From NCBI GenBank assembly GCA_965644295.1, contig CBFFRP010000064.1, positions 124,001 to 188,000 of the forward strand: DNA of 64,000 nt. Direction: 5' to 3'. The notes below the pieces were generated by a model. That model saw nothing but the letters and a program-made list of their open reading frames with translations, was not told the DNA's origin and did no database searches. Numbering within the stretch: the first letter of the stretch is position 1; each line of letters begins with the position of its first letter. Shown in pieces: positions 759-62,757 of the stretch. This stretch comes from Paraphysomonas bandaiensis. Taxonomy: Eukaryota; Protista; Chrysophyceae. A program made the position numbers and the translations under genes.

Positions 759-1617
759 CTATTTCAAAACGCGCTCCCGCAAGCTCTTGCGGATATGAGA
801 ATTGGACACACCGGCTATACCATACGCCCCCATTACTCTTATCATTCTCATTGCAGTCGACTCAAAGTATATATTTTTGAGTTGGGTTGCTCGCGATAGC
901 CAAGTCACCTTGGTGCGGTTGTAAAAGTCAAGTGCAAGAAGATGTACAGGAGTTAGGCACATCTGCGCAAATACTGGCACTGTTATTTGACAGATGCTTT
1001 CAGCGAGGTGAGGTTCTTTAACGGCTTTGGACTGGACTAAATAGTCAGCAGCCATGGATGGAAAGTTAAATGCAGCCCCAATGGTAAGTATATCTCGAGC
1101 AAAAAATAGACCCCACGAGGCCAGAGGCAGTTTCGGTGCCTTTTTCTTACTATAAACTTGTGCAAAATATCGATCTTTAGTGATTCCTAGGGCCATATTT
1201 ACCGCAGTAGTTCCGGCCAGTTTCGGGTAAAAACTATCTTGTTGGTTCAACTCACAATAGGTAAGAATGGTGTTTGCAGCAGAGTATGTACCTCCGTATA
1301 CGATGCACACTGCCAAAAAGGTAGGATGCGACATGAATTTAACGGGCGACAAAATGAATGTTTTAAAATTGCTAAATGCTGTATGAAAAATGTTCACTCT
1401 ATTGAATGCGGCCTAAAAAAGGTTAACATATATCACTGTAGTATGTATCGTATCGTACCTTTTGTGTGACAGTTTGATCGACAATTTTAATGAATGGCGC
1501 AACAAGAAAAGCAGAGGTACATGCAGATACAACATCCGCTAGATAGAGTTTTATCTTCCTATCATCAAATGTTGTGCCTGGTATGGGAAAAAGAACTGTA
1601 CTTTCACTTCTTGCCAT
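759..1617 (-). CDS. Membrane protein of the SPBC365.16-like / mitochondrial-carrier-related family, 2 exons
   Basis: Exon 1 (1617-1459) and exon 2 (1412-759) join in frame across a 46-nt GT-AG intron (1458-1413). Motifs ADVVSAC..FLVAPFI.IVD, YGGTYSAANT, KDRYFA, LFFARDILTI, TPVHLLALDFYNR and several hydrophobic segments recall this family from memory. Confidence 0.7.
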
Positions 1618-2991
1618 GATGGTATGTTCACTTGATGGTTATCCTTATAGTGTGACACGTTCCTTATAGGAGATACAAACAACCACTTCTAAGCACTTAA
1701 TATGACTGTATATTGCATATATATTGCATAATATCATGAATTATTATACAGATTGATTCTTATTCTCTGTTCTAGTTGAATGAGAAGCCATATGTCATCA
1801 TGTACATGAACTGCACGAATTATTCACTCACCACAAGAGGTTATACAGAATATTATATGAGGATTCCAACTGCCCATTTGCATACATATACATACATATA
1901 TATACATACACGTTGCTCCGACGTGGATTTTTTTCCCTCTGGACAAACCATGTCCACTAAATATTATACACTTGTATTTTGATGTATTCTGGATTGGTGT
2001 ACGTGTGAGTGAGGTCATATATATGGGGTGATACAGGTACTATGAGACTAATAGGTGAGTACAAGGGATTGGGGTACACAGTGCTGAGGGTTATATAAGT
2101 AATTCAATATACAAATACATGCTCTAATTAGGGTACGTACTGCTATACTGCAGCTAGGAATTCCAATTAATATACAAATACACATTTGTGGATACTCTGG
2201 AGTACGTACAGTACTTTGCTGGGGGACAGCAACATACAAATACATTCTACGTACTACTCGGCACAAATATAACTGCTGTACATATTGGGGTTTTCGCTGA
2301 TTTCAAATACTGAAAATACAGATATTTTTATTAGAAAATTCTGCAGCTGTGGGGTAGTTTAGGGGTTTCTGACTACTCTTTTCCCACAAAACTTGGGTTT
2401 TCACTCCACAATGACCTTAAAAACTTATCAATACAACAATAACTAAACAGCAAGAAAACACTTATATAATATATCAAGTAGGAAAGAGAAGGGAAGCTAT
2501 CGACTCTATTTCCTGAGCAGGGCAGTACAATGGAAGTATCGATAGGATATTATGAAACCACAACTTGTAGTAACAATCCTCCTTATATCTCTACATACAA
2601 ATTACTGTAGAAACTGCTGTATATGATATTCGCCATATTTAATACTTTCCAGAAACCGGGGATTTTCTGAAGCCAATCATATTTAAGAATTGTATACTCT
2701 GATGATATGATTTGACTAAAAGAAGTTATGGTGTTTCTAAATTAACTAGTTTTTTTGTACTAAAAACCACAGCCTCACATGAAAATAGTGGATTTTTATG
2801 TCATGTATATTTGACGAGAAGAATTCTACATGAATATTATCTGTATGTATGTTTGTATGTAGACAGCAGGAGTGTGTAGGTCGGTATGTATGTATGCCTA
2901 TGTATGTATGTACGTATGGAACATTCATATGAATAGTACACAACATTCTATACATTAAAACCCCACTCTGCATATATTAACCACAATATCT

Positions 2992-4596
2992 ATGACACGA
3001 GTAGAACTCCTTGTTTACGATCTATCAAACGGTATGGCTGCCTCAATGAGTGAGGCTATATTAGGCCAGAGAATAGACGGCATATGGCATACAGGCGTAT
3101 TAGTATTCAATCGAGAATATTTCTTTGGTGGAGGCATACAATCTCTTCCAGCTGGAATGTTTGTTGCAATGAATGGTATCCGTCCATGTCAGACTCTTCT
3201 GATTGGAGAGACAGATAAAAGTCAACAGGATTTAGAGGCGTATCTTCAGTCTATTAATCACTTATACACACAAGAGACATATGATCTTATTAATCATAAC
3301 TGTAATAACTTCTCTGATACTGTGGTTCGGTTTCTAACTGGAACTGGAATACCATCTCATATTATTGATCTACCACAGCGTGTGTTTTCTACTCCTGGAG
3401 GGGCCCTTTTACGTCCAATGATAGAGGGGATGCAAAACAATATCAGGCAACAGTCTGGAATTCCTTCTGGTGGGGCTATTCCAGGAGGTACTTTAGACCC
3501 ATTTGCGAGAAGTGCTGTACCACCAGCCTTCAGAGAGACAGTGTCAACCCAGTCTGTCTCTTCGAACGCTATTTCCAGCAGCAATGTGACATCAACCGGT
3601 GCAGGTGGTGGGGCAACTCAAACTGCTGTTCCTGCATTTATTGCACAGGAGAAACCTCTGGCGTCTGCTGATCGGAATGAGCGCACTACTCGGGCACAGC
3701 TCTCTCGTATATTATCATCTGAGGAGGTCGTCATATCAACCGAGGAACGAGAGGATATCGAACGGGCTGTAGATATATTATTATCCCCAGATACTCAGCT
3801 AAAAGACACCATTTTCCCGAACAAAGCTTTCTGCACGCTCTGTCGCATTATGACTACAGTACCTAGCTTACAAGTTTCTTGCTTATTTGTTATCCGCCTG
3901 ATGGCACTCTGTAGTCAGGGTATAGATGCCACCGATGTGCGCCCTCGCATGCGTGCCATACTTTTATCTGTGTGCTCTGTTGCAGGAGTGGCTAATTGCG
4001 ATACAGTTCCCGCCCCACGAAGCACTCCTGCTATTGTTCTTGCTTTTTGCGCCGTAGCAAACTTCCTTTGTCACCGTGAGGGCTGTGTCGTTCTTTTCCA
4101 GGGTGAGGAGGGGGAGGCGACGGTGGGGATGTGCGTCGACGCGGCCATGTGGGGTGTATGCCATGAAAAGGCCGAAGTGCGACAGATCAGCTCAGCTTTA
4201 GCTTACAACTTGACCTTAGCCAGTACTCACTGGAGACAGGCAACTGCTGGTACTGCGTTACGGTGGCGTGGTATTCACGTTGAGAGCACTCTTGGCCCTG
4301 GAGATGATGATGTCCAGGTCGATGGTGATCTTCACCCACATCTGGTTCAGCTTTTATGCGGTACCATGGAAAGTCTGAGTGATGAGAGTGACCAAGTGTC
4401 TCTAAGGAGGCGTATGCTAACCGCATACCGGGCATGTCGTGCTGGTGGTGATCAAGCGAAGGAACTTTCAATTGCTCTAGGGTTTGATTCTGTTATTTGT
4501 GATATGAGAACGACATCAGACAAAAAACTGCATGACGATGATATTCACTTATGCACATTGTTGGAAAGTTTCATTAGTGGTCAGCAGAGTAGCTGA
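2992..4596 (+). CDS. PPPDE/DeSI deSUMOylating isopeptidase with a C-terminal PUL (ARM-like) domain
   Basis: Intronless 534-aa ORF. Shows VELLVYDLS.G, GIWHTG (catalytic His), EYFFGGGI, YDLINHNCNNF (catalytic Cys) and IPSHIIDLP. The helical C-terminal half has EVRQISSALAYNL and RRMLTA, typical of PUL. Confidence 0.9.
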   Translation: MTRVELLVYDLSNGMAASMSEAILGQRIDGIWHTGVLVFNREYFFGGGIQSLPAGMFVAMNGIRPCQTLLIGETDKSQQDLEAYLQSINHLYTQETYDLINHNCNNFSDTVVRFLTGTGIPSHIIDLPQRVFSTPGGALLRPMIEGMQNNIRQQSGIPSGGAIPGGTLDPFARSAVPPAFRETVSTQSVSSNAISSSNVTSTGAGGGATQTAVPAFIAQEKPLASADRNERTTRAQLSRILSSEEVVISTEEREDIERAVDILLSPDTQLKDTIFPNKAFCTLCRIMTTVPSLQVSCLFVIRLMALCSQGIDATDVRPRMRAILLSVCSVAGVANCDTVPAPRSTPAIVLAFCAVANFLCHREGCVVLFQGEEGEATVGMCVDAAMWGVCHEKAEVRQISSALAYNLTLASTHWRQATAGTALRWRGIHVESTLGPGDDDVQVDGDLHPHLVQLLCGTMESLSDESDQVSLRRRMLTAYRACRAGGDQAKELSIALGFDSVICDMRTTSDKKLHDDDIHLCTLLESFISGQQSS

Positions 4597-4949
4597 TGGA
4601 GGAGAATGATAGAGAATGCACCTTCGTTTGAAACATTAATTTTTATATATTTTGCAAGCACGCTCACTGTAAACTAGATAAATTTGCAAGGCAATTGTAT
4701 CTTAATAACAAAATTGCTTTTTAGTATTTTCGTAAATAACTGGTACTACATGATTTTATTATTAATCAAGAACATCCGCCACATTCAAGTAAGATTACGT
4801 TAGTGTGCATGTGACGTAATCACATTACATTGAACCAATGAATTTATATTATGCTATGCAAGCACTGGTCATTACATATTACATTATAGAATAGTATATA
4901 ATATTTGTTGTAGTGTTAACACTTCAATGTTTTTACCGCTACTGATCAA

Positions 4950-5694: not shown

Positions 5695-8005
5695 CTAACT
5701 TTCACGAGATTTCTTCGATGCAGGGGAGGTGCAGTCAGCGTCAGATTTCTCTGCAGTCGATGCGGGCTGCAACGGCGGACGACCAGCACGTCGCTTTGGA
5801 CCCCATCCAGCCTCTGCAAAAAATAATCACGATACTCCTAAAAATTTACATCTACACACCGGGATTGGGAGGGAATCGTAATGCCTTTTTACGGTCCTTC
5901 AGCGACTGCGAGGCATCACTTAACAAGTAGTTATTTTAAATAGGTTGATATACCTCGTGAATGGTGAAGTTTGCTTCCATACTTGGGGCCTATATCATCC
6001 ACATCAGAAGTGCAGGGTGGCAGACACTATGAGTACCTTAGCAAGAATCTTTTTGGAAGACTCATGTTGCTGCTTCTTTTTGCTAGGGGGGTCAGATGGG
6101 TACCTGTGCATATGATTAGTGTAGTGTGATCACTACAAACGGTACTCACTGTATGCCGTACGATTTCACGATATCCCACACTACTGAGTTTGGAGCATCT
6201 GTTTTGATGGCCAGAGGCTCTTTGTGAAAATTGGACACCCGGTAACCTGTTCACCCATTCTTCAGTACGTGCTAACTGTGTATACTGATGCCAACACTTA
6301 CCCGCATGTAAGAGCGCAGACTTGAACTCAAGCATGGGTACAGTGCGCTGGTTAACGGCAGCACAAAGGGACTGCGCATGCCATCAGAAGAAATAACATA
6401 CAATATATAGGACATACCGCAAGGGAGTAAAAAAAGGGTACATCTGGGAGTTCTTCAGACACCGCCCTAAAGACCATAAACATTATAAACCAGCTACATC
6501 ATACAGCTAGACAATTAACACACGTCAAGAGTCCCGATAGTCGAGGAGCGGTGGGAATAGGGTAAGGCGCGTCCCCTTCCTCAACCCTTCGCAATAGCTC
6601 TTTAACAACCTCCTGGTTGTGAATCGGGGCAGTCCAGAATGGCCCACCAATTTTGAGTCTCCCTCCAGTCTCCTCGCATACTCGTGGCACCGACAAAGAA
6701 GCGTTACAGTAAGACACATTGTGATCCTTCTTGGCTTTTTGGGTAGTACGGGAATCAATCTCTGCCATCGGCTGGATATAAAACGTAGGGCATTGGGTGG
6801 ACTGATAAATATGGCCACGGCGAGTGCAACTGTTCTTAACTTCGGCAGGAGATTGATACACGCGAACAAAGAGGCGCACGTAGAAATCAACAGCCACTAA
6901 GATAAGTGATTACACAAACTCCCGTACGCACAGATATTCACCTGACACCCATGGTACAACGTAGCGCTTATAACGGTTGGCAGCTGAGTCAATGGAGTGC
7001 AGAAGGATCCTCAAAGCCATTTCAGCATGATAGCTGCATAGATTAGAGTGAGAAACACGATACAGAGAGTTCTTCACAGAATACACCTGCCCTTAAGAGA
7101 GATACTTCCATATTTGGCGTAGCACGTCTCGGGATAGTTCCCAGAGAGCACTGGCATGTCTGTAAAAGAATCCGTCAGGACAGAAAAAAGATAAACTTTT
7201 CACACACCAGTGCACGTTACGCAGAGGAGACCTCCATCTGCTACAGCTTGTACGGCGGCGTCAAGAAAAGGTGAGGCCTATACCACGGCACAGTAACACA
7301 AGAGAAACAAGAATAAAATTGAACATACTGTGCCATACGGATCGAGATCGATGACATCGAACTGCTTTGCGGGTTCCATATGTTGGTACATAAACATGAT
7401 GGCATCTCCAGTGTTAATAGTTACTCTATCAATACATAATTCCATAAAAGCGGTTCAACTATGCTGAGCACTCACCTGTCCGGAGAAACACCATTGCGCT
7501 GCACATTCTCAGCTGCAGCAGAGGTAGCAGCCGGCAACAGGTCATTAATTATCACTTGAGACACGCCTAATGCAAAAAAATAATGCATATGCCTCTCCCT
7601 CTATGGATAAACTAACCTGGGATCTCTTTCAAGTATCTGACAGACCTGAGACCTGTTGCAGCAAGTGCATCTAGTATAGTAATGCCAGGCTCAGTAGTAG
7701 AACTCGTATTACGAGCTTTCTTATCTTGATTTCTTTGTTCAGCAAACAATCTTATCACCTATCGAGTCCATATACAGTAACACATCTCCATATATATATA
7801 ACTCTATGCACTGTGACCTGTATGGAGAGGTCCCTATTAAGAACCTGTTTATAAATGTAACGGTATGTAACTGTACATGGAGCGGTATACAGACCTGTAC
7901 TTTATTATAGAATACAGCCTCGTTACATGCATAGAGCATGGAGGCTTGCCCCTCTATAATCCTCTCGTATCCCTCAGGGACTGGGTTGTGATCATCCATT
8001 GACAT
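5695..8005 (-). CDS. TRM1: tRNA (guanine26-N2,N2)-dimethyltransferase, about 16 exons
   Basis: Manual splicing over 15 GT-AG introns gives one continuous frame: [115 protein letters not shown]. Stop TAG at 5697-5695. Confidence 0.95.
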
Positions 8006-8736: not shown

Positions 8737-11700
8737 ATGTTTCTTCCACTTCTATTCACCTTCACATGGTATCACTCACTCATCCCACTCATTCATGCTC
8801 ATGGAATCATCGAGAAAGTCTACAATCAAGCATTATTTCAAGCTCATGGAATCAACTCTTACAATATAAATAACTGGCACTACAAGCCCTCCTCTTCATC
8901 CCCAATCCCATCAAATCAACCCACTATCATTCTTGGATGTGGTCCATCTGTATCATATACCCAAAAACGAAATCAGTTACTGTCTGTTGCGAAATTTGTG
9001 GACGTGGCAACTGTTCGATTTGAACAAGAAGAAACATGCCTCATTGCTCACATGCTGTCATCTGATATCACACAATTTGAAGAGTAAGAACCACTGTATT
9101 ATTTATTTTGTATTATGATGTATATATTGTATAGTTCAGAGTGGACGTTTGAAAACTTGCCTCCTGTATTGAAGATTCATCAAAACGTGATTAATCATAT
9201 ATCTTATCGCGCTAATTTTGTAGAAGGCATAAACTCTGAGCGCACAATATCTGAGCCAGACGCTGTGCCTTTTCACAATGCTACGGTTTCATTGCATGCT
9301 CCTGAGAGCAAGTCCCTGACTGTCCAGTTCATTCCTGGGGACGTGCAATCTGTGGAGACTACCACAGCGCGAGTGATTGCATCCTGGGAGGATAGAACAG
9401 CGGCGACATTACAAAATTCAATGCACGGCGGTGTATGGACGAAGCTAGGTACACACATGCGGTCTCGATTTCATACAGATTTAGAGCAGAGTAGTGCAAG
9501 AAGGTGCAGAGTACCTGCATCGACTATCTTTGAGTTTGAAGACACCGCAGCCCGACTTGTGGACTTAAGTGGTTGGAGTACAAAAGAGAGTAATCTCGAA
9601 TGCCTACAACTTCTTGTGGATGCCTTTGCGATGCATCCCGATGTTGTGTCTGTGTCTGTACAGGGTCGCCCAGTACTCCTCAATTATGATGCTCGAGGTG
9701 TCACCCAGAGCGGTATCTCGACCTCAACCCCATTCACAGACGCCGGTATCATTGGTGAGGGTCACATAGTGGGGGTTTCCGATAGTGGGTTAGATGATTA
9801 TTCTTGCTTCTTCTGGGATAACTCTGAATACTATGGCTCTGCTTCTACTACACGAAGCAAATATAACAACCCGTCAGTGGAGCGGCATAGGAGGAAAGTT
9901 GTTCAATATGTAGCCTATGCAGATGGATATGACGGAGAGGCTGGGCATGGCACACATGTGGTGGGAACCATATGTGGTGATTCTATATTTGGAGGTTTTA
10001 GCAAGGCTAATGGAGTGGCACCTGGTGCAAAGGTTGCTTTCTACGATGTTATGGGATCGAATTCTGTCTACCTCTCTATCCCTGATCTCTATACCTACCT
10101 CTTTCGCACTCTCTACAACGCTGGCGCTCGGGTAATGAGTAACAGTTGGGGGTCCTATTCTGGGCAGAGCGAGTATGATGAACGAAGTTATGATGCTGAC
10201 TACTTTCTATATACATACCCAGATGCTCTTATTATATTTGCTGCTGGCAATTCCGGGTCGCAAGGTACCAAGACTGTGTATTCTCCTTGCACGAGGTAAA
10301 GATCTACTGTTGACTATATTTTGACTTACATTTGACCAGTAAAAATGTTCTTTGTGTGGGATCTGTCGACTTGAGGAATGACGATGATGACGAAGTTGTG
10401 GCTTCTAGTGAGAGTAGAGTATCATTTTTCAGCAGCATGGGACCGACTTATGACGGTCGCATCAAGCCGGAGATAGTTTCTACCGGCAACAAGATCGTGT
10501 CCGCCATGTCTTCTGGGTGGCAGTCTGAAGAGAAATCTTGCGGGGTATACGAGACTTTTGGTGGGTTAGATATGCAGTGCAGTAGTAGTAGTAATATTTT
10601 TCCCATGTTACAGGTACGTCGATGGCAGCTCCCACAGTGGCCGGCAATGCAATCCTACTGCGTGAGTATTTCGAAAACAAGTATATGTACGTCTGCAGGT
10701 CAGATTATGCCTACTGCAGATCTTTTACCCCCACAGGTAAGTTTTGAGAATATGCTGTTGATCATCTGAATCTGCTACTCATATATCAGGTTACCTTCTG
10801 AAGGCGATGTTGATTCACTGCACGGACGCAGTCAACAGGTGATTTTTATCTATCAATCAGTGTACCAGTAACTAAATACACGCAGCTATTCAGAAACCGC
10901 TTTTAATAGTAAGACACAGTTGTCGAGCTACACTTTACAAAGTCCTCCAGATAATGTACAGGGCTATGGTGCCCTTAATCTTGCCGATGTGCCCTTGACC
11001 ACTTCGCAGAGAAAGAAATACGACCTCTACGTGCGTGATGAGTTCTCATATTCACCGAATTCAGAGTATGTGGTAGAAGTGTACGTCAGTCGCAGCAACA
11101 AGCCGCTTAAAATTACCCTGGTTGTTTTCTGTCATCTTCATCATTATCACATAATGCTATTTTGTAGGCGTGGTATGATCGACCGTCGACTATTGGAAAT
11201 TCGTACAATCTTTTACAAGCGGACTTGACGCTCTTTGTCTCGCACTCGTCGAGTAAGAACTCTTGGTACGGAAACCGTGGAACATCCTCATATCGAGACA
11301 GCGTAAATCCTCAGGAACAAGTCACGATTACTAAGCCAGGTACGACAGTAAGAAGATTCCATTCTAACTAATTCGATGCAGCTACCGGCGTCTACAAGGT
11401 GTATGTGACTAGCAGGAGCAGTTCCGTTAAAGTTAAAGGTGCCCTGGTCATATCTTGCAATGGGTACGTGCCACCTCTTATATTAGCACGGTTATTGAGT
11501 TTGATCACAGCAATATTGTGTCTGAACCCACTTCCACCACTACGACTGTGACCGGAGAAGTTAATAATAATAACGCCCTGATGAAGACGCCACCCAATTC
11601 GACTGATGAGTATGTGGTTTCGACTTTACGAGGGAGCAGCAGCGAGAGTGCACCAGCTGATGATACACGAGTGCTGTCGACGCAATCGGGAGGCGCAGTG

Positions 11701-12952
11701 AGGTAGTGTGTGTAATTCTTATTTATATTTGACTTTCGTTTCTGCTATAGTTCATCGGGTGGATACTCTATAGTTCAGTCCTTTAGTATCAACACAATTC
11801 TGTCGCCTCAGACTGAAGTGTGTACTCACCGCTTCAGTACTTCTTCGTCACGCGACGTGCTTCATTCTATCACTCTTGATCTTGATGCAACCTACCTGGG
11901 TGGAAGTGCTGCGTTTATACTGGGAGTCAACCTGTACGCCCCCAGTGGCGAAACTGTCCAAGTCGGTGGCTACTATAACTACAAGGCATCGGATCGACTC
12001 TGGAACAGGTGAAAGAAACTATTCTGCGAAGAAATTTGCCTGAATTGGTGTAGGATGTGGCCTGTGCAATGGGCAGGAGCTACCGCCCCGGTTGATGGGA
12101 GTTCGCAGTGGATCTCCACAAGGTTTACCACCAGTACTCGATTATGTTATGTGATATATGTACAGAAACCTAATTGACGCAGAACTAAGGGAGGTAGGAG
12201 AGTGGAAGCTATGCCTGGAAATGTTGTACGACTCGTGGGAGACCACTCAGTACAGCGGTTCTGTTACTCTTAGGTTCATGTGAGTTGTTTTTCAATATTG
12301 AAACATTTGTAATATCGATGTAGTGATATCGGAAGTTTGAGCTCCTCTTCGAAGTCGAAAGTGAGTACATTACTAAGCTGCTCTCACTACTTGTAACAGT
12401 CTATTGTAGAGCACAGAGAACTCTGGAAGTATTAGTGACACGGCACTCGTTTTAATAGTATTCTTTCTGGCACTGGGTGCCTCATTAGTAGTCGGTCTTG
12501 AAATCAGGTAATTTTGCATTACACCCGTGCTATGTAAATAACATATTACATGAAGAAAACGAGTGGAAATCGTTGATGCTGTTAACCGTTTAAAGAGACG
12601 GAGGCAGCGGGGAAAAGCTACTGTATCCAGACGGAGTAAACAGAATGCTGGAAGTGATGGTGAAGGTGTGAGTCTTAACCAGGTGAGTGTGATCACTGCT
12701 TACTGCACCACTACGTAGTCGTAAATCGTATTTACACTGTATAATGCGAAACAGGCTCCCGCTTCCTCTGACCAACCCGTCGAGGAAATTAATGCGCCTG
12801 AAGTCACTAATGAAGACGCTAACGCTTCAGAGAAAGAAGATATGGCAATGGGTGGTACTGAAGAGAAAGAACGGAGAAAATCGCCTGTTAGAGGTGGAGG
12901 TATGCTTGCAAGTATGACTACACTACGACAACCACGATACCATCAAATATGA
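8737..12952 (+). CDS. Subtilisin-like S8 serine protease (KP-43/Tag-type catalytic domain), type I membrane protein, about 16 exons
   Basis: Signal-like N-terminus MFLPLLFTFTW. Catalytic motifs VGVSDSGLD, GHGTHVVGT, FAAGNSG and, after splicing out 10561-10613, GTSMAAPTVAG. Also SNSWG, GPTYDGRIKPEI, LLKAMLIH, QGYG, KITLAWYD. Transmembrane segment ALVLIVFFLALGASLVVGL near 12440-12500. Stop TGA at 12950-12952. Confidence 0.9.
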
Positions 12953-14099
12953 ATAGATTACACATATGTTATGAATATGTTAATTGTTGTGTTTGAAATC
13001 ATAGCTGCACTTTTTCTTCATGATACGGCCAATTTTTATTCTAATATTACATCAATTAAGATAAAACTTTAAGCGAAAAAGGATGTAGCTCTATAATAGC
13101 TTATAGTTGATTATTAGGTATAGACTTTCACTTAGTACATATTTATCATAATCTAAGTTCGTACATGCATTATCGTATAATTCTAATCGACACATGACAT
13201 AATCAATTGAATATATCTGCGTGGTGGCATTCACAACTCTTTGAGAGATAGCAATACTCTGGTAGACATATAGTGGAGTGTTTTATATCATTACACTGCA
13301 CTTTACTCAACATATGTCCTGATCACATCAAATAAAGAATTGATCTTAGTAATAGTAAAACAATGTTGTGATTATTAGAGTGTAAGGTAATGAACACGAT
13401 AGAGTTATCAAGGTTTGACATTATATGAGAAGTATTAACTTAACAACAGAAGGTAACTTATACTCAATGCTGAGAATTATAAATTATAATCAATATCTCT
13501 TATCATTCATCAATATCATGTTGTCTCCACTACCACTCATTTCTCGTACTACGATCTTACATCATCACTACAACTTGCATCGTCACTATATTCCGTTTTA
13601 CCGCTATATACTTATCGTCATTCATTCTCACAATACGATTAACAAGACTACAACTGTATAATACAGTAATTTAAAGACCTTATAGCTACAGCTTTCAATT
13701 GCTTTCATATAGCAGAACTCAACAAGAGTGAAAATTATGAATAACAATATAGAACATAGCTATCATGCACAACGGAATAGTTAGAAGTGTAACTCATAAT
13801 GACGACGTTAAGATGACGATCATGTATCGTCGACAGATACTCTCTAATTCAGTTCATGATATATTTCATTGAACATTATAACTCACAGATACAATCTTGA
13901 ATCTTGTATTAAGCTGAATTCTAATACATCATCGTAACTAGATATGGATCTCTAGATGTAATAGTTAGGCCATTCTTCATTCTTAATACCCTAAATCCGG
14001 GGATTCATGGAGTTTGAAGTAAAAGCAGGATATTTACTATTCGTTGTTTCCTTGGTTTATTTAATTATAATATATATATTTAATGAGAAATATTATTCC

Positions 14100-15552: not shown

Positions 15553-15662
15553 CTCAACCTCAGTGTACTTAACACCCAAACTAACCATATCCGACCTCAT
15601 TAAACCACCCATCATCCTCTACACAATCCATGCTATAATCCACATCATTCAACTATCTCATT

Positions 15663-37106: not shown

Positions 37107-37140
<34 letters not shown>

Positions 37141-48214: not shown

Positions 48215-51200
48215 CTACTTCAACAACACTCTTTATTACTATACATCTCGGCTTGACATAAAGTATTATACGATGTATACCACCTGAATGAGCACAAAAA
48301 GTGGCGGCCACATTACAGAGACTACACAAACTCACACTTTACTCGACCCACTGCTTTCGAATGCTCTAAAGCAATTTTACACATTGTCTCCCTCTCCTGG
48401 ATTCTCCTCGCAGCATCACGAGTCATTTTTGACATCAGCCTGTCAGAAGTCTTCTTGGAGTATATAACGGGCTTGAAGGTTGCATCACGAAGTTTATCTG
48501 ACTCAAACTTCCGTTGTAAATCTTTTTGGCGAGTCTCCCGAATGTTCCTATCTGAAATGGGTGTTATACGTATTACACATGTGTGCACTACTAATATTTA
48601 CCATTGTATAGCCGCTCATGCCGAGCTGTAGCTGATGCAGAACGACTTCTCAATTTAACACTACGTTTATCCTGATGGAGTGTTGGGACTCCACGACACT
48701 CTGTAACGACTTCTTTATCGAGGGAAGTCAGCTGTTGTGGCTTAGAGCTTCTATCTGGTGCAGTCAGAATCATGTTTAAAGGAGGAGTTAATCCGGACTC
48801 CATCAGTACCTCAAAGCACTCAATGAATTCTTCTAGGGAAAGAAAAGCTGATTGTGTTGACTCAATCACCATGGTGGCAGCTTTGCTGAGTGCCTTGGGT
48901 TTCAATAGCGATGGCTGAGCATGTAAAGTGTCCAAAAGTATTGGCTGAGTGAATCTGATGTGAGACTTCGAGGAGGGTGTTGGAAGCTTCTTAATATCGT
49001 CCAAGTTAATAGTTTCGCTTGGTTTCAGAACACCATTGCCATCCACAAAACTATCATCTACAGACAAGTCTGGATGTAACATCGAACCATTCTCGCTTAG
49101 TGTCGGTTCATGACGAGCGAGGGTTTCCGCACGAAAGAAGTACTCATTTTTACTCCCATCGGCAGAGTCACTTTCGGGACACGCTTGCTCTGATAGTTCT
49201 GTCTTCTTCGGCGTAGTGGCATTTTCAACAGAAACTGGAATAGGAGAACAATCATTGGGAAAGGAACCAGTACAAGAGTTCGTGTCTGGGGGTTGATCTT
49301 CTTGGTGCGCAGGGCAGAGTTCGTAGGAATCTTCACCCGCTTCACGAGACATCCGCCATTCATCACGAGCATCGCCCACATTCCCATTACCAGGGCTGTT
49401 ATTCTTTCGGTCCTTGCTCATCTCCGCCGACATAATGAGAACCATGAATATCTCCTCCAAAGCAGCTCGTCGCTTCCGAGCAGCAATCTTGTTCGACACT
49501 ATGTTGTCACATTTCATATGCTTCTGTTCCTCAATATTTTTCTTCTCATCATGCACTCTCATTTCTTGCCGTTCTTTCTTTCGCTCCTCTCCTTTCCTCA
49601 TACTGTGGCATTAGCATTGTAAGGCAACATACTCAAATCTGGAGATAAGCTTACCGATCAACAAGGTTCTCTATATCACGCTGTGTTAACTTCTTATCAT
49701 GTTCAGGATCCCTGCCCAACAGTCGCAACTGCTCTTTTTCGAATATCTCCTCTTGAATCTCTTTCTGTCGTAGACGATAGTCATACAAACGTTGTGTAAA
49801 CTCCTCCTTGGTTTTCTCGACAGGTCTGAATTTCGCTGGTCCAATATCCGGTACGAAAGATGACCTTGTCAACGATGCACTGGCAGATCTTCTCCTTGGA
49901 CTTGGGATATAGTTTCTTTCCTGAGACCAAAAAGTGTAAGACAAACAAAATGTGTGAAACTTCAATACAGTACCTCATATAGGAGATCATATATATTCTT
50001 TCGTACATTCCTTTCGTCGCTGCTTCCATTACTCTGATGACCCAGTGATTCATCAACTTGATCTCTATCGCTTCCACTAGGCAACGTTGACCGAAACTCC
50101 TGTGGCGTTGAAGGTGGGCTCATATTAGCTGGTGTAACAGTCCCAGTAACTGTTGAAGCAACACCATAAAATCGTTTCTTCCTTCGCTTCTCGGCCAACT
50201 TCGAGCTTTTATCTGATATTTTTGGATGAAAGGCGTTACGCTTAAAGTCTTCTTCCTGAGCATGCAGAGCAATACGACGGCGCTCTTCCTCAGCAAATGC
50301 GCTACTATGAAGTGCATTGAAAACAGTTTGAGGCTTTCCTTTGTAGTAACGAATAGTTTCACATTTGGCATTGAAGTCACGTGTCACTAGCTGAGGCTGA
50401 AAAGTGGGGGTTTCTTCCTTTTGCCTCTCAGCTATGTCCTCCCGAAGGCGATCGCAGTTTCTCCTCTTTGCCTCCAACTTTTCTTTTGTTAAACATAGTT
50501 TTCATATACACAATGACATACCCAGAGTATATCCCTTCGGTACAAGTCCTCCCCAATATTAGTACCAGGAGGGAGGCATTTATGCGACATTCTCGTCACC
50601 TTGGAACGCGCTCTAATAAGTCTGGAAAAGTATTAATACAATCCACAACATAAAAACATAAACACCTTCTCTGTCTTTCCTGCTCTAATTTCTTTTGCTC
50701 CTCAAGACGTTCAAGAAATAGCTGTCGTCTATTTAAATTCGCGCTCGCATCACGATATAGTCTACCAACAAAATTAAAATGATATGCGTCTTACGCGTTG
50801 CATACCTTTCAAAAATATGTTGTCGATGTAGTACTGGGCTAGCGGACCTTGGCCTCTGTTTTTCTGTGGTACTAGCTACAGTAAGGGAATTACGTATCGC
50901 CGATCGTGGCCGTGGAGAGGACAGACTACGTGTAGATTTCTGAGACTGCGGACTCGACATTGCAGAAACCACCGTCGACCACTCTTGTCTGGCGGCATTG
51001 TATGCCTCTTCTGATCTTCTTGAGTATCCTCTAGGAGATCTGCCCCGCGTCCAGCTTTCCACAGGAGGGTATGTGCCGTCGTGCATAGGAGTCGAATCTA
51101 CTTCTGCATCAAGTTTGCGGGTCGCATAAAAAGACTCAGTGTCGTCCTCCGTTTCGGGTGCAACAGATTGATCATCAGACTCCGCATTGACGGAATTTAC

Positions 51201-52162
51201 ACGATTCACATCATTGATAGGCTCTTGAGTGCTAGCTTCTCTAACACAGCTCGCATCAATCATCTCTTGTATCTTGGCAGTCAGTGGAAACACCGAAGCA
51301 GGAGAAAGGTTGTGATGAGATACAAAGGCAGTTGCCACATCATGAGCATTGTCATCTGCACGGAAAACCACGTCGGCAAACTGCGACTCGCTTATTCGTA
51401 CTTTAAGTGACAAAAGATAATTACTGGATGCAGAGGTTGGGGAAGAACGTTTCGACTCCTGGGGAATAAGTTCATTGGGCTTCTCCGGAGTTATATCTTC
51501 TTTAAGACCGTCCATAATCTTCTTCAATTTCGATGCGAAAGGATAATAGGAAGATGCTTCCAATTTGTGTTTTCGCACAAAGGCTGCAGCAAGGGCCTCA
51601 GGTGTATCACCAGCGCGTATAGTGAGATCTTTCTGTTCATTCTCTGATATTGAAACACCTATAGTTGCTAATATCTCCTGTTCATTAAACATTTGACTAT
51701 CAGATACAGACTGTGAGTCCATATCATGTCTAGAGAGGTCTTCCGTCTTTGTTTCATCTCCTGTTCTATAACTATCTGGTCCAGATATCTCACTATGATC
51801 CGTGTTACTTATAGATGACCCTTCATCACTATTCTCACTCATCTGTAGCTTTTTTTTACCTATCAAACACACTGTTATATCAGATGAAACAACGACATTC
51901 ATTCACCTTCTTCCCATAATGAACGTATCCTTACAAGTAATTGTTGATATGATTTACGTGGGAGTTTATATTTATGAATAGTGTCCTCAGCTAATGTTTG
52001 AGGATCACAGTAGCGGCGTATCTTGAGGGGTATACTCTTCCCTTTTGTATCAATATTTAATATTGCAATCACTTCATTCTTTCTTATTTTAGAGTTAGTT
52101 GGGACACTGTCAGTTGGAGGGGATTCATGTGCCTCTGCAATTGCTTCTAGTTCAGCTAACAT
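48215..52162 (-). CDS. Large multi-exon protein with three N-terminal PFU-like repeats and dispersed TFxPxI motifs
   Basis: Collinear ORF blocks from 52162 to 48322 are separated by short GT-AG introns. It has three roughly 50-aa repeats (..D.P..LA..F...H.L..) and motifs TFQPQL, AFHPKI, TFKPVI with RLY/LLY segments. The termini are uncertain; the last exon, to 48215, is inferred. Confidence 0.72.
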
Positions 52163-52714: not shown

Positions 52715-53623
52715 ATGGCTGCAATAGATGACCCTCAACCATCACGGATACTCAAACACATCTATCTAGGAGGAAAGCATCACGCTAAGTCCAAATTTCT
52801 CCTCCAACAGCTTAATATAACTCACATTTTAAACTGCACACCATCTCGCAGGTATATATATATATATACCCCTCTCATTGTTAATTAACAATACATTTAT
52901 AGTGTTGATCGTGCAGCTGGATGTTCAAATTATTTTGAAAAAGATAAATTGTTTATATATAAACGCATATCTGTATTTGATAATAGAGGTGAAGATATAT
53001 CTCCTCATCTGATAACTGCATATGACTTTATTGAGCATGCTAAATATCATGGTAATGTTCTTGTTCATTGTCACAGAGGTGTCAGTAGATCTGCTGCTTT
53101 TGTTATAGCCTATCTTATGCGTAAGAATGAGATGACATTGGATGAAGCAATGTCGCATGTGCAGTCATGTAGACCAGTTGTTCAACCGAATGCATCATTT
53201 ATGTCTCAATTGCGACAGTTCGAGTTGAAATTGAAAGCATCCCAAGAAGAACTTCAAGATAGTCCTGGTGATAGCGCTATAGGGGTTGCTGGACCATGCA
53301 TTGGACCGACCAATGCTACTCACCCGCAAATGTCCGGTGGCGCCGTTGAGGGACAGAAAGTTGTCCCATCTATGAATAGTGAGAGTAACAGTTTAGAGGA
53401 TGCTACATCAAAACCCGATGTTGGGGCCACTGACCAGTGTACTGTACCGGTCGGTCCCCCCCCGAGACCAGTATTGGATAGTGCTCAAAGTGAACAGGAA
53501 TTAATCAAGAATGGACATCCCTGTAAGCAGAATAGTGAAAGTTACAACCCTGATTGTACGACAGAGTCTTTTTCTCCGAATAGTAAGCGCATGAAACTGG
53601 ATCATATTGAAAGTATAGCATAA
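52715..53623 (+). CDS. Dual-specificity protein phosphatase, 2 exons
   Basis: PSRILKHIYLGG..ITHILNCT, intron 52852-52902, VLVHCHRGVSRSAAFVIAYLM (HCX5R) and RPVVQPNASFMSQL. Confidence 0.93.
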
Positions 53624-54146: not shown

Positions 54147-55364
54147 TTATAGTTTCGCAAATAAAGATGATTTCAACAGTTTAATCAGTATCATTAAGTG
54201 CGATTTAGGAACAAGGGAGGGGTGAAGTGGATTAAAATCCACGTCTCTTAAGCGCTGCAGGTAGTCTCCAGCCACCACACCGGGTAACATTGTGTAGATA
54301 CACTCTCTGCGTTTGTCGGATGGCAAAGCATCAAACAATTCTCTAAAACAAAAAATTTAAAAAACAAGCACGTAACATCCACACCATAAAACAAAAGAGT
54401 AGTGAACATAACAACAGAATCATAATATATTGGGTCACGATATTCAATGAAAGGAATATCCATTACCTGGCGCGATCAAGGTGTCCAAAAGCCTGACTTG
54501 CCGTATCGAAGACAACCTCCTTGAACGCAGCCCTTTCGACTTCATCGAATAGAGAAGTAGGGTCCGTAGTTGGTTTTTCGCGGCATGAAATGAGGGCATC
54601 ACGGGCGGAGACAGGCCCAGAAGACGGCAAAGATTGTGCTAACAGAGATTCAACAGGTAACCGAATCGATCCCTGAACACTCAAATTGTTAAGTTGAGCT
54701 CTGTGAGAGTAGGAATACTGACCTGAGAGATGTCTACAGCTGTACCCCTTAGAGTACTTACAATTCCAAAGGCCACACCTATATGGCTGGCCATATGCTC
54801 TACAGGGGAGGAGGATGTCGCAGATGGTGATGCAATGCCTTGTGCCTCCATTGTCAGGTAAAGAAGTGAGGAATGAGATCTCTCCACACGGCTTTCTAAA
54901 TCAGACAAAGATTCAGGCTGAGGATTAATCATATCCTGCTGTCTAGCTTCTACAACAGATTCGAGCCATCGTCGCGATATATTTTTCTCTCGAACACAAA
55001 TATCCAATGCACGGACTACAGGATGCTCAACATTCGCCATATCAACTGTTCCATCATACATTTTTGATATCAAATCATTCCACCATTTATATCTCATCTT
55101 AGCAGCAGATATATTCCCACGAACTGATGATTGTATTAATGCAATCTCCACATTATACGCATGTATGACATAAAACTCTGATCTTCCACTACTGGGAGTG
55201 AGTAACCCAATCAGATAATTCTCAAAATCATGTTTTTTTACAATATCCATACAGTATTGTATAGATGCTGCAGTAGAACAGTGACGATAAGAGAGTGTTT
55301 GTATATGAGATGGAGGGAATCTTGTAGAGAGGAAACGTTTGGTAGATATGGATATATATTGCAT
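54147..55364 (-). CDS. NDUFAF6: Complex I assembly factor 6 (squalene/phytoene-synthase fold), 3 exons
   Basis: Presequence-like start. YCMDIVKKHDFENYL, AYNVEIA, MRYKWW, HPVVRAL, SSLLYL, ASHIGVAFGI..LRG, A.GHLDRAR and YLQRLRDVDFNP. Confidence 0.92.
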
Positions 55365-55908: not shown

Positions 55909-58900
55909 ATGATGTTATCTTCTATACAGCGTCGTACATACATAACCAAGTCACTATTAACCACCACTAATAGGCATATATCATCCCATCGTACACCAAT
56001 ACTTCATCCAAGCTTTGATATCATTAAATCCTCTTATATCACAGAGTATGACATCAATGCAACTCTTTATAAACACAAACGGACAGGTGGTGAAGTATTA
56101 TCAATAGAATCACAAGATGATAATAAAGTATTTGGAATTACTTTTCGTACCCCTCCAAAGGATTCAACAGGCCTTCCTCACATACTTGAGCATAGGTAAC
56201 AACCCCTTCTACCTCCCTTAACCCTCACAGCTCATTTATATAATCAGTGTGCTCTGTGGAAGCAGAAAATTCACATCAAAAGAACCGTTTGTCGATCTCT
56301 TAAAAGGATCATTACAAACTTTTTTAAATGCTTTTACATATCCGGATCGTACGTGCTATCCTGTAGCCAGTATGAATAAGAAGGACTTCTATAATCTTGT
56401 CGATGTGTATATGGATGCTGTATTTTGTAAGTATTAACTGTATGTAATCCTCATACTAACGTATTATGTATTTTTGTTATGCTCTTTAATAGTCCCAAGA
56501 GCTGCATCTGACCCGCAGGTGTGTGTATATTGTCGTATCCAGCTACTCAGAGTGACTTTTTTTGTAGGTGTTGCAACAGGAGGGTTGGCACCTAGAACTG
56601 GACGATCCGTCACAGCCGTTGCAGTACAAAGGCGTAGTGTTTAACGAAATGAAAGGGGTGTATTCCTCACCAGATGCCCTTATGGGCCGGGCTATTCAAT
56701 CTGCACTTTTTCCCGACAATGCCTATAGTGTGGACTCCGGTGGGGATCCCCGAGCAATCCCACAGCTAACCTTCGAGGAGTTCAAAAAATTTCATGCCAC
56801 ATCGTATCACCCATCCAATGCGAGGACCTTCTTTTACGGGGACGATGACCCGCGCACGAGACTGGATATGGTGGATCAATACTTTAAAGAGTTTACTGCC
56901 ATGCCAGTACAAAGCACTGCTGTAACTCTGCAGCCTAAGAAGCCCCTGTGGAGAGGTATAAAGGACAGATTAAAAGTACCTCACCCAGCTGCAGCACCAG
57001 ATGAAGGCGGGGAAGACCATAGAATTATTACTGTGAATTGGCTATTAAATGATCAGCCTCTCTCATCTAAAGAGAAGCTTACTCTTGCTATTCTTAACCA
57101 CCTGATGTTGGGCACAAGCACAGCTGCCCTTCAGAAAGCTCTTACGGACTCCAGACTCGGGGAGAGTGTTGTTGGTGGCGGTGTGGATGATGACCTAGCC
57201 CAAGCCACATTTAGTGTTGGCATGAGGGGTGTGCGGGAAGATAATGTGGAGGCCGTAGAGGAGCTGGTGCTGAAAACATTAACGGATTTAGCATCCTCTG
57301 GCTTTGAAGAGAGCGCGGTTCGTGCTTCTCTGAACTCTGTGGAGTTTCATCTACGTGAATTCAACACAGGAGGGTTCCCAAAGGGTCTGAGCCTCATGCT
57401 CGGGTGCTTATCGGAGTGGATTTATGATAGAGACCCACTTAATGGGATTCGCTTTGAGGAGCCACTGGCAGAGCTGAAAAAGGATCTGGCGGAGGGCAAA
57501 CCGGTGTTTCAAGATCTGATTCGCCGACTACTTCTACAGAATGAGCACAGAGTGGCAGTAGAGATGGTACCGGACCCATCTCTTGAGCAGGCTCAGTTAG
57601 ATGAAGAAGCTAAAGCGCTAGCCGATATAAAAGCAGGGCTTTCTGAAGAGGAGATTGAGGGCGTGATGCGGGACACGAAATTGTTGCGAGAAGCTCAGGC
57701 AGCCGAAGACTCCCCAGAGGCAAAGGCCACTCTCCCACGCCTTACAGTTGAAGACATTGATCCTCACCCAAAGGAGATTCCCACTGAGAGTCGTGCACTA
57801 TCTTGCGGGTCTACTGTGCTTGAGCACCCTATTTCCTCTAGTGGTATATTATATACGGATATTGGTATTAAATTTACTGGCGTGCCTGAGAAAGACCTGA
57901 ACCTGCTACCATTGTTCACTCGCATGTTGATGGAGACTGGGACAGAATCGATGGACGACGTTGCACTCTCACGACTTATTGGTGCTGAAACCGGTGGTAT
58001 TCGGGCATCGTGGTACTCCGATTTGAAGAGTTCACCGGGACATGTCTGTAATCCTGAAGATGTGCTTTACTACTTCATGATGCGTGGGAAGTGTACCACT
58101 GAAAAAATTCCTATTATGTTCGATATTATGACCGATCTATTATTGAATGCTCAGCTCCACAACAAAAAGCGGGCACTTGATATGTTACTTGAGGCGAAGG
58201 CACGGAGGGTTAACAGTGTTGTCGCTAACGGGCATAGCTTCGCGATGACTCGCCTCTCCTCGCGGTATTCGTTTTTGGGATACATGGCCGAGCACACAAG
58301 CGGTCTGACGTATTTGCGGTCACTGGATGCTTTAATTGATGAAGTGGAAAACGACTGGCCATCAGTTCAGGCTAGGTTAGAAAATATTCGCAACACTATT
58401 TTGAGTACACCGCGAAGTCAGGATGGTGTTGTCATCAACCTGACGGGAGATAGGCCCACACTCGAAAATAGCCGACCTTCGGTAGATGCCTTCGTGAAAA
58501 GTGTGAATGATGCGGCTGTTGGGCTAGAAAATAAAGGGACAGCAAGTCAATCATGTGCCGACCTTGTACGGATATGGAAAGATACCAAAGGCGCCGACAC
58601 CACCGACAGAGAGGGTTTCACCATGACTTCACAAGTTAATTATGTGATCAAGGGAGGTCCTATGCTGCAGCCAGGTCTACTTTGTTTTCTGATATATGCT
58701 GTTAATATGCTGATACAACTCTATTTTGTAGGGGAGCCAGTAAGTGGATCGTTTTCTGTTGTATCCCGGTATTTGTCCAACGGGTACCTTTGGGATCACG
58801 TCAGGGTTATGGGAGGGGCGTACGGGGGATTCGGAAGGTTTTCTGGCCAGAGCGGTCGATTCGTGTTTGCTTCCTACCGCGACCCTAATATACTGAAAAC

Positions 58901-59267
58901 TCTTAACGTTTATGACGATGCTGCAGTGGTTCTTAGTGGTGAAGATGTATCAGCGGATGATATTTTACAGAGCATCATCGGTTGTATTGGTGATCTTGAC
59001 AGTCCTATGTCGGTTGATCAGAAAGGCTTCACTGCCATGGCTAGACACATTTCAGGTGAAACTGCGGAAGAAAGAGCTAAATGGAGGCAAGAAATTCTTG
59101 CGACGTCTGGAGATGACTTCAAACTTTTTGCAGAGAAATTAAAATTGGTAGTTGATAACGGCGGTGTGGTGGTATTTGGTTCAAAAGCTGCTCTTGAAGA
59201 AGCTAACGAGCAAATAGACCCACCTAAACGCTTACGCTTAGCACCTGCGTTTATATCTCACCGGTAA
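55909..59267 (+). CDS. Presequence protease PreP/Cym1/PITRM1 (M16C metallopeptidase), 5 exons
   Basis: FGITFRTPPKDSTGLPHILEH|SVLCGS (HXXEH), TFLNAFTYPDRTCYP, QEGWH, YKGVVFNEMKG, YLWDHVRVMGGAYGG and SYRDPN. Ser/Arg/Thr-rich N-terminus; an alternative ATG lies at 55870. Confidence 0.96.
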
Positions 59268-60725: not shown

Positions 60726-61453
60726 TTAAAAAATACGCATGTAATCTGTAAACGTTTTCAGTATGGCAAATACATTGCGATTCTGCGTATTATCTGGCTC
60801 AACTTCATCTGAGCTCTCTCTCCGTACAAGTGCCTCTAAAGCATCAGCTTGCTGACCATCAAAGGTGTTATAATCACAAAGCGGCTCATCTAGAGTCGTC
60901 CTCGCACTACTCGTGCTCTCCATACCCGATGACAGCCCAGATAGACTCTCTTTCGCTCTAGGAAACTGTCCCGCACTGATTCCAGCTGTCTGTTCGGCAT
61001 CTGCTCCATAAACACTACGCACCAAATTGAATGAAAATAAAATACATCCGAGCCCCACCCCAAAAGCAAACGTTAGCTCTACTATGACGATGATGAGCAC
61101 TGTGGCGTATCCGAGAGTGGTCTAGTGAATTAGTTAGTACAGTGTATATATAGTTATGCAGTGTGTATGTATGTCTGTATAGATGGGCAGTACACGTATG
61201 GGTATACTTATAGATATGCAGTGTGTATGTGTGTCTGTATAGGTGTGAGTATAGTGTACAGTGTGTGTATATACGTTAAGGGCATATGTATGTATAGAGA
61301 TGCATGTGTGTGTATATGTATGTATAGCTACGTGTATGTATGTATGTATGTGTATGTATGTGTGTGTGTGTGTGTTACCTCAGCTGATGTGATTGGAAGC
61401 ATAGACAAAGAGAGGAGAAGGAAGAATGGACGACATGGTGATGAACTAACCAT
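60726..61453 (-). CDS. Small single-pass membrane protein of unknown function, 2 coding exons
   Basis: MVSSSPCRPFFLLLSLSMLPITSAE, a GT..AG intron, then TTLGYATVLIIVIVELTFAFGVGLGCILFSF: a signal peptide followed directly by a transmembrane helix and an acidic tail. The intron (about 61122-61378) is filled with TG/TATG repeats. Confidence 0.65.
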
Positions 61454-61620
61454 CAGGAGAGATACAGTGATGAGCTCTTGGCTCTAGTATGATATAATGA
61501 TGACTGTCTCTCTATATATATGTATGTATATGTGTGTGGTATATGTGTATATATACATACACAGTCAGACATACTGCTCTATAGAGAATATACTCACCAG
61601 CAGCAGTACACCACCAATAC

Positions 61621-61735
61621 ACGGGAGTCTAACGGGAGTTATAGGACTCTACTTCTACTTACGGGAGAGTCGAACGGGTAGTTAACAGTCTCCTACTTAC
61701 GGGAGAGTCTAACGGGAAGCCTAACGGGAGTCTAT
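61621..61735. repeat. Cluster of seven ACGGG(A) motifs in a divergent spacer
   Basis: Copies at 61621, 61632, 61661, 61674, 61699, 61712 and 61724. CTACTTACGGGAGAGTCkAACGGG is duplicated at a 38-bp period. Confidence 0.85.
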
Positions 61736-62077
61736 CACTCCCACTATCCGTATCGCTCTTATTTCACCGTTTCACTGACTGTTTCTATTTTTCCATAACA
61801 GTCACACGTATGTATGTAGAGCAGCAGCATCATATAGAAACATACGCATCACTCTCTTCAAGCCTAACCTCTCGAACATATCATCAAACACTATCTCAGT
61901 AACATCTTTATAACCCTCTTACGAATCTATTGCATTACTCAACACTCTTATCTTCACTTGAACAACAAGTGCTGCATGCATTGCAATATAATCTAACTAT
62001 ACATAGATATATACACATATATATACACACATCTCAACCACCGCAAACTCATCTGTCAATAACACCTTATCATAAAC

Positions 62078-62757
62078 ATGTCAATAACCAACAGTCTCTC
62101 TGCAACAATGATCGGTCATGGCAAATCAGATGCTGATCGTCATCATGCGGTTCGTCAAAACTTTCGTAAGGAAGCACTGCGTATAAGTGAACACACATCA
62201 CAGCAGCATCACAGTAGAAGAGATAAACTTATGCAAATACAGTATCCTGAAACCATTAATCGAATGTGTTCATCTCGTCAACAAAACACTCGTTCAGAGG
62301 TGAAAGATACGAATACATCACAAAGTTCAAGGCCTCCATCAGTCCGACGAGGTATACAGCTGAATACAGCAATACACTCTTGTTCATAGCTTACTGTTAA
62401 TATAATGCAGCACAAATGGAGAGTGAATTCTTAGCACAACATTCTTCTAATTTAAAGAATGAGTACATGATGAATAGCCGAAAGAAAAGGTTCAATCGGT
62501 CGAGTGGTTCTCAGGCGGTTGTCAACGATGTATGTATCTTTGTATACCTCGAATAGTATGTACTCATGATTTTTTCCTTGCAGATATTAACTGGTAGAGC
62601 TCCAGCTGCTAAAGAGCCAATATTTCCCCAGAATCCATCTCATCAGCAGGTTCTAATGATCACAGGAAAGTTGAAAATGCCCGATGCGAATGTGCTTCCA
62701 CCAGACATACCCAAACCAAAGAAGTGGTTAGGCAACGACCGAGGATGGGAAACGTGA
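62078..62757 (+). CDS. Small basic protein of unknown function, 3 exons
   Basis: ORF blocks are joined by GT-AG introns at about 62352-62411 and 62530-62583; the protein ends KKWLGNDRGWET. Confidence 0.7.

Follow-up and report, generated by a model that had tools for sequence, protein, structure and literature searches.

Introduction

An excess of oppositely oriented neighbouring genes has been described in brown algae. In Ectocarpus, 61.7% of the genes flanking intergenic regions adjacent to a transcription start site (TSS) belong to a divergently transcribed pair, and these pairs have shorter gaps and overlapping TSS chromatin regions (bioRxiv 10.1101/2020.03.09.980763). In brown algal genomes, alternating pairs can account for more than 60% of the total, and divergent intervals are shorter than tandem ones (bioRxiv 10.1101/2024.02.19.579948). 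For the alternating orientation in Ectocarpus and other brown algae, both preprints refer to Cock et al. 2010. In this study we analysed gene orientation in a 64,000-nucleotide stretch of the genome of the chrysophyte Paraphysomonas bandaiensis (GenBank assembly GCA_965644295.1, 62.6 Mb in 669 contigs; contig CBFFRP010000064.1, positions 124,001 to 188,000), hereafter called the window. An earlier reading made from the letters of this DNA (the sequence-only reading) had noticed that its genes almost always switch strand and had proposed that the genome is built from head-to-head gene pairs served by intrinsically bidirectional promoters. We find that strand alternation is genome-wide, as a tendency rather than a rule.

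The genome resembles those of Ectocarpus and other brown algae in that it is a stramenopile nuclear genome in which significantly more than half of adjacent genes lie on opposite strands. The spacing is also alike, divergent and tandem intergenic regions measuring 409 and 2293 bp in Ectocarpus and 766 and 1886 bp here. However, the bias looks stronger in P. bandaiensis (71-77% in a blind sample and 89% in the window, compared to just over 60%); tested against the brown-algal value of about 62%, the excess in the independent sample reaches only P = 0.03. Moreover, the head-to-head gaps carry TATG/TACA microsatellite arrays, unlike those of brown algae, and the introns are about 50 bp long, whereas brown algal introns are of kilobase scale. 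Shared nucleosome-depleted regions have been measured in Ectocarpus, whereas the gaps described here are known from sequence alone. The trait is a known kind of genome organization, that of brown algae, probably in a stronger form.

Kinetoplastid polycistronic units and bacterial operons form long same-strand runs. Such directional gene clusters also follow a genome-wide non-random orientation rule, but the rule found here is the opposite one, and, apart from one stretch and a polyketide synthase cluster, three or more successive genes seldom share a strand. The bidirectional promoters of mammals, yeast and plants (PMC1487180, PMC4089025) are similar in that two genes are transcribed outward from a gap of less than about 1 kb. 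Head-to-head pairs are a minority in those genomes (about 10% of genes, according to PMC4089025), whereas they are the default here; for those pairs a shared element and co-expression of the partners have been documented, whereas here both would be predictions. Our literature searches found no description of strand alternation in chrysophytes or Paraphysomonas. An annotated assembly of P. imperforata CCMP1604 is available on JGI PhycoCosm, as stated in a paper.

Gene orientation in the window

The strand switches at 17 of the 19 adjacencies between the 20 genes of the window (89%), exactly as the sequence-only reading had counted, and the binomial tail calculated there, 191/524288, is arithmetically correct (3.6e-4). 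The count was reproduced by combining an orientation-blind gene finder with the RAD1 gene, which is supported by Pfam. The gene finder was a custom two-strand hidden Markov model (HMM) comprising a 3-periodic Markov coding model, donor and acceptor matrices and an explicit intron length distribution, and it was trained iteratively on the window and 200 kb from other contigs. Since a single intergenic state is common to both strands, the model has no preference for relative orientation. Simulated non-coding sequence (200 kb) yielded no gene calls, even with relaxed penalties, and the introns that it learned had a median length of 50 bp and a 95th percentile below 100 bp. The HMM alone predicted 19 genes with the strand string - + - + + - + - + + - + + - + - + - +; RAD1 was overlooked because its exons are almost without codon bias. 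The HMM was adopted because a block map of open reading frame (ORF) scores was too insensitive: it dropped genes of the SDH2, RAD1 and RPL12 type and created false long same-strand blocks. Two other approaches were also discarded. A run with a second, "atypical" coding class on masked sequence generated artefacts across masked stretches, was partly circular and revealed nothing new, and intron-consensus patterns, tried as strand tags for the whole genome, proved either too sparse or too unspecific. Pfam scans were conducted by single stop-to-stop ORF or exon, and all domain matches are therefore at the exon level. The genes of this roughly 41% GC, intron-bearing window are as follows.

759-1617, minus strand: gene 1, membrane-protein-like ORF; weak, 217 codons, HMM score 6.5 (17 with a second coding class), without Pfam match
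2992-4596, plus strand: gene 2, DeSI/PPPDE peptidase, single exon; PF05903 E 1.8e-39, HMM score 60
5695-8005, minus strand: gene 3, TRM1 tRNA methyltransferase, many short exons; PF02005 E 1.5e-16, HMM score 75
8737-12952, plus strand: gene 4, subtilase, 3' end uncertain (12009-12952); PF00082 on two exons, HMM score 104
15663-17858, plus strand: gene 5, four exons, without Pfam domain; HMM score 92, same strand as gene 4
18684-19341, minus strand: gene 6, succinate dehydrogenase iron-sulfur subunit (SDH2); PF13085 E 3e-16, Fer4 matches
20629-22299, plus strand: gene 7, the "coiled-coil" protein of the sequence-only reading; HMM score 93, without Pfam match
23826-24999, minus strand: gene 8, seipin; PF06775 E 2.5e-34
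26009-29701, plus strand: gene 9, TPR protein, single exon; TPR_12 E 3.6e-55, HMM score 143
33001-33513, minus strand: gene 10, RAD1, extent uncertain; PF02144 E 5.7e-11, overlooked by the HMM
34552-35472, plus strand: gene 11, CUE-domain protein; PF02845 E 2.5e-6, HMM score 21
36299-36894, minus strand: gene 12, ribosomal protein L12 (uL11; RPL12); PF00298 E 2.4e-20
37770-44208, plus strand: gene 13, large WW-FYVE protein, nine exons; WW and FYVE matches, HMM score 177
47182-47703, plus strand: gene 14, small ORF gene, weak; 173-codon ORF scoring 11, HMM score 5.5-8.5, same strand as gene 13
48322-52162, minus strand: gene 15, PFU-like, eight exons; HMM score 166, weak PFU match
52715-53623, plus strand: gene 16, dual-specificity phosphatase (DUSP); PF00782 E 2.5e-29
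54147-55250, minus strand: gene 17, NDUFAF6-like (SQS_PSY fold); PF00494 E 4.7e-24
56372-59267, plus strand: gene 18, presequence protease PreP; M16C_assoc E 6.7e-60, PreP_C
60726-61558, minus strand: gene 19, small, transmembrane-protein-like, weak; 131-codon ORF scoring 17, HMM score 4.9
62108-62757, plus strand: gene 20, weak; HMM score 3.8, the simulated null giving 0 calls in 200 kb

Single-ORF Pfam matches confirmed the strands previously assigned to 14 named genes (the match of the PFU-like gene being weak), and the nine divergent pairs, which had been placed about 530-1380 bp apart from ATG to ATG, measured 549-1374 bp. The two same-strand adjacencies are those between the subtilase gene and the gene beginning at 15663 and between the FYVE gene and the gene beginning at 47182. 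No tRNA or Rfam-family genes were found within the 64-kb window.

A pattern of this regularity might be an artefact or a chance run, as the merging of same-strand ORFs forces alternation and the window had been noticed for its regularity. The gene models are transcript-free, the FYVE (6.4 kb), subtilase and PFU-like blocks were merged from many ORFs, and four genes (759-1617, 47182-47703, 60726-61558 and 62108-62757) were called on weak ab initio scores alone; in addition, the window was chosen for the pattern. However, no gap bridged in merging these large blocks exceeded about 230 bp, and neither such gaps nor introns of about 50 bp can accommodate a 3' end with its terminator followed by a promoter, so that exon merging is not the source of the pattern. 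For the same reason the FYVE gene, whose exon-joining gaps do not exceed 230 bp, was treated as one gene. The short gaps separating same-strand ORFs are introns of about 45-70 bp with the consensus GT[AG]AGT...YAG. Furthermore, the orientation-blind HMM yielded the same strand string, the strands are backed by Pfam, and leaving out the four weak genes altered the switch count without changing the conclusion. The alternation in the window is thereby confirmed as real.

Gene orientation on other contigs

The contribution of chance was assessed outside the locus that had prompted the analysis, in a blind sample of four 50-kb stretches on three other contigs, whose round coordinates were set before the sequence was seen. 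The numbers of strand switches were as follows.

C297, 100-150 kb: 10 of 12 adjacencies by raw HMM, 10 of 12 after curation
C297, 600-650 kb (C297b): 4 of 10 by raw HMM, 6 of 11 after curation
C80, 200-250 kb: 0 of 3 by raw HMM, 0 of 3 after curation
C123, 150-200 kb: 15 of 16 by raw HMM, 17 of 17 after curation

Over these 200 kb the strand switched at 29 of the 41 adjacencies in the raw HMM output (71%, P = 0.006) and at 33 of 43 after curation (77%, 95% confidence interval 61-88%, P = 3e-4), and the excess of opposite-strand neighbours over 0.5 was thus significant either way. Curation consisted of inserting two genes that the HMM had overlooked between same-strand neighbours, TMEM138 (Pfam E 4e-13) and an ORF of 259 codons that weakly matches ABC1, both of which turned out to lie on the opposite strand. 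When the window and the blind sample were pooled, 50 of 62 adjacencies switched (81%). The effect was most pronounced in close neighbours: 22 of the 23 gene pairs less than 1 kb apart in the blind sample were on opposite strands (P = 3e-6). This is the result least tied to the gene models, because no gene can hide in less than 1 kb, and a tandem gap of 500-800 bp is physically possible, judging by the head-to-head and tail-to-tail gaps observed. Pfam backed the called strand for most of the sample genes with a match, including 10 of 18 in the fully alternating C123 stretch. That blind DNA on three other contigs is likewise biased makes it scarcely credible that the alternation of the window is an artefact of merging or a chance run.

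The sequence-only reading had regarded a genome-wide strand-switch frequency near 50-60% as speaking against it. The value in the blind sample is 71-77%, and in a pessimistic recount it falls to a borderline 63-69%. Several points weigh against the genome-wide reading. With 43 adjacencies the independent sample is small, and its stretches are heterogeneous (chi-square P = 2e-4), with only 6 of 11 switches in C297b and three or four same-strand genes in C80. The gene models contain ten predicted introns longer than 300 bp, and splitting five long-intron models into tandem pairs lowers the switch fraction to 63-69%, near the brown-algal values; the most pessimistic recount, in which the five splits are applied to the raw count, gives 29 of 46 (P = 0.05). 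As at least three real genes were overlooked by the HMM (RAD1, TMEM138 and the ABC1-like ORF), more hidden genes could shift the fraction up or down. In addition, what is said below about promoters and selection is inference only.

Tandem neighbours with Pfam support on both genes do occur, namely ARMT1-like/cofilin, AAA/ion-transport and PGI/EF-hand. The main same-strand cluster in the blind sample is a pair of giant type I polyketide synthase genes in C80:200001-250000, of more than 16 kb and about 23 kb. Both are almost intron-free and contain KS, AT, DH, KR and ACP domains, and the one of more than 16 kb runs off the stretch. In C123, a small low-scoring model on the minus strand (182197-182496) matches no more than a fragment of the acetyl-CoA carboxylase BT domain (E 3e-10) and may represent a gene fragment or a pseudogene.

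Architecture of the intergenic gaps

The three classes of gaps differed in length. The median was 766 bp for head-to-head gaps (ATG to ATG, interquartile range 582-958 bp, 26 gaps), 1052 bp for tail-to-tail gaps and 1886 bp for tandem gaps, and tandem gaps were longer than opposite-strand gaps (Mann-Whitney P = 5e-4). TSS-to-TSS distances must be shorter than these ATG-to-ATG distances, and head-to-head gaps generally fall within the spacing of less than about 1 kb that characterizes bidirectional promoters.

The alternation could also be explained by neutral compaction. If deletions are favoured and tandem gaps need the most sequence, dense regions would become enriched in opposite-strand neighbours without any selection on orientation. 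The tandem gaps are indeed the longest and the short gaps are mostly those between opposite-strand genes; moreover, this habit has been called typical of very compact genomes (bioRxiv 10.1101/2024.02.19.579948). Yet a 62.6-Mb genome with abundant young transposons is not especially compact, and compaction alone cannot raise the switch frequency over all gaps above 50% (here 71-77%), because it alters the lengths of gaps and not the orientation of genes. We consider neutral compaction an improbable explanation.

The base composition of head-to-head gaps was structured as well. The plus-strand skew (C-G)/(C+G) was approximately -0.15 over the left 40% of the gap and +0.1 to +0.2 on the right, and the skew of the right half exceeded that of the left half in 23 of 26 head-to-head gaps (P = 9e-5), compared to 16 of 24 tail-to-tail gaps. 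This central flip implies that each half of a gap bears the polarity of its own gene, with the switch near the centre. The words TACA, ACAT and TATG were enriched upstream of genes relative to downstream (e.g., TATACA in 40 of 63 upstream versus 11 of 63 downstream regions). Perfect TATG-type arrays of at least six units located outside gene models were confined to promoter-bearing gaps, either head-to-head gaps or, in tandem gaps, the region preceding the downstream gene, and were absent from tail-to-tail gaps. The exception is a run of 24 bp that falls in a long intron predicted for gene 19, a weak model. The arrays and related tracts of the head-to-head gaps and the further arrays of this type are listed below; none of these features has an assigned strand.

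20016-20166: (CATA)n array, 37.5 copies, in the SDH2/gene 7 head-to-head gap (Tandem Repeats Finder, TRF)
33567-34052: low-complexity tract of degenerate TATG/CATA-like sequence, RAD1/CUE head-to-head gap (from translation and scores)
37099-37338: (TACA)n array, 60 copies, in the RPL12/FYVE head-to-head gap (TRF)
37569-37644 of the window, and L017:3445-3570 and L018:2934-2957 of the sample pieces: further TATG/TACA-type arrays

The hexamer ACAGTC, counted strand-specifically in the window and the sample together, occurred at 1.24 per kb in head-to-head gaps and 0.43 per kb in tail-to-tail gaps, and it tended to sit closer to its own gene. In the gap 61559-62107, two opposed ACAGTC motifs are separated by about 20 bp (window 61777-61805). 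ACAGTC(A) may be an initiator-like element; the statistics are weak, and we regard it as a lead only.

The head-to-head gaps look like dedicated promoter regions. The question is how the two promoters of a gap are related. The sequence-only reading had suggested intrinsically bidirectional promoter modules, with the gene pair as the unit of genome organization. In its full form, the gene pair would be a functional unit, with one such promoter per gap, co-regulation of the partners and conservation of the pairs as blocks. The short and uniform head-to-head gaps (interquartile range 582-958 bp), the sharp switch of polarity at the gap centre and the closely opposed ACAGTC motifs of the gap 61559-62107 would be expected from such a unit, NDUFAF6 and PreP are both mitochondrial, and a genome consisting of divergent pairs only would alternate perfectly whatever unit is flipped. 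However, about one fifth of the adjacencies are tandem, with Pfam-supported genes on either side, and eight of the nine pairs in the window, that is, all except NDUFAF6/PreP, lack an evident functional link. Moreover, the mirrored skew and the oriented ACAGTC motif seem to be explained by two separate directional halves, placed back to back, no less well than by a single element common to both genes. Conservation of the NDUFAF6/PreP pair could be followed in three distant metagenome PreP loci (40-44% identity, 60-64% GC), one of which includes the upstream flank: its 2.6 kb of upstream DNA hold no NDUFAF6, which at 40-44% identity is nearly uninformative. Of the earlier proposal, the alternation, which extends to independent contigs, is supported, and the head-to-head gaps are short and structured; intrinsically bidirectional promoters and the pair as the unit of organization would be hypotheses, and we judge it unlikely that the gene pair is a functional unit.

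A possible explanation of the alternation

The explanation that we favour instead concerns the layout of the genome as a whole, in which promoters would face promoters and 3' ends would face 3' ends. A head-to-head gap would consist of two back-to-back directional halves, each comprising a promoter and a 5' untranslated region, and both halves would probably lie within one open-chromatin region, by analogy with Ectocarpus. In a gene-dense genome the tandem layout could be selected against, as read-through from the upstream gene would hit the next promoter. Insertions and rearrangement breakpoints may be tolerated mainly in tail-to-tail gaps, and if the two breakpoints of an inversion fell in one class of gap, alternation would be preserved. 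If breaks were tolerated only in tail-to-tail gaps, the pattern would therefore perpetuate itself, and the partners need not form a regulated or obligatory unit.

It is highly probable that the genome-wide layout is one of short, insertion-poor, mirrored promoter gaps and longer, transposon-tolerant 3' gaps. With a similarly high degree of confidence, we take the window to represent the ordinary architecture of the genome, without any locus-specific signal, and alternating runs in this genome would then be background. Far more tentatively, and leaning rather against it, we consider that this may be among the strongest strand-alternation rules of mid-sized free-living eukaryotic genomes (at least 80%, and near 100% in close neighbours), which would be maintained because mirrored, microsatellite-bearing head-to-head gaps admit neither insertions nor breakpoints, whereas transposons are taken up by tail-to-tail gaps.

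In most eukaryotes gene orientation is near random, and a strongly alternating genome is therefore useful. It could serve to examine whether transcriptional interference (i.e., read-through and promoter interference) selects on gene order, and its head-to-head gaps offer compact two-way promoter fragments for stramenopile engineering.

Same-strand exceptions and repeats of the long gaps

The two gaps of the window that separate same-strand genes, and the longest tail-to-tail gap, hold the following repeats, again without an assigned strand.

13408-13724: solo-long-terminal-repeat-like element of 317 bp, at least 40 copies at 96-98% identity
15291-15553: TGTATA/ACAT microsatellite array directly upstream of gene 5 (TRF)
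30000-30772: copy of a roughly 790-bp dispersed repeat (at least 40 copies, 88-95% identical), located between the TPR and RAD1 genes in the longest tail-to-tail gap
45382-45834: (ATGT)n array of 113 copies upstream of gene 14, within the second same-strand gap (TRF)

The first same-strand gap, between genes 4 and 5 (12953-15662, 2.7 kb), contains the 317-bp repeat and the TGTATA/ACAT array, and no convincing ORF was found among those inspected there. Many copies of the 317-bp repeat elsewhere form same-strand pairs about 5.2 kb apart. This spacing fits the long terminal repeats (LTRs) of a retrotransposon, apparently a young one, and the copy in the window thus resembles a solo LTR. The second gap (3.2 kb), downstream of the FYVE gene, contains the 113-copy (ATGT)n array. 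A hidden minus-strand gene at 44204-44787, made up of two ORFs, would repair this second exception. This candidate was rejected: the ORFs are of low GC content with negative coding scores, and, relative to a single paralogous copy, their DNA is 85-95% identical while the protein is only 55-69% identical and interrupted by stop codons. Being AT-rich, negatively scored and better conserved in DNA than in protein, they do not constitute a gene, and both exceptions stand.

The long tail-to-tail and tandem gaps examined were filled with transposon copies or dispersed repeats. Next to the repeat of about 790 bp, inverted partial copies of it are nested up to approximately 31680. None of the 10 ORFs taken from long tail-to-tail gaps had a credible Pfam match, the sole listing being TMEM239 (E 0.006, 16.9 bits against a cut-off of 27 bits). 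An element of about 250 bp in a tail-to-tail gap of C123 (187227-187478), of which there are at least 40 copies that are 97-100% identical, seems to be a very young repeat resembling miniature inverted-repeat transposable elements, and the 5-kb tandem gap of C297b holds a repeat element of about 1.4 kb. Finally, the segment 44485-44979 of the window, which is non-coding in the frames tested, has one paralogue on contig C360, where it is represented by four pieces (85-95% identity) spaced by extra DNA.

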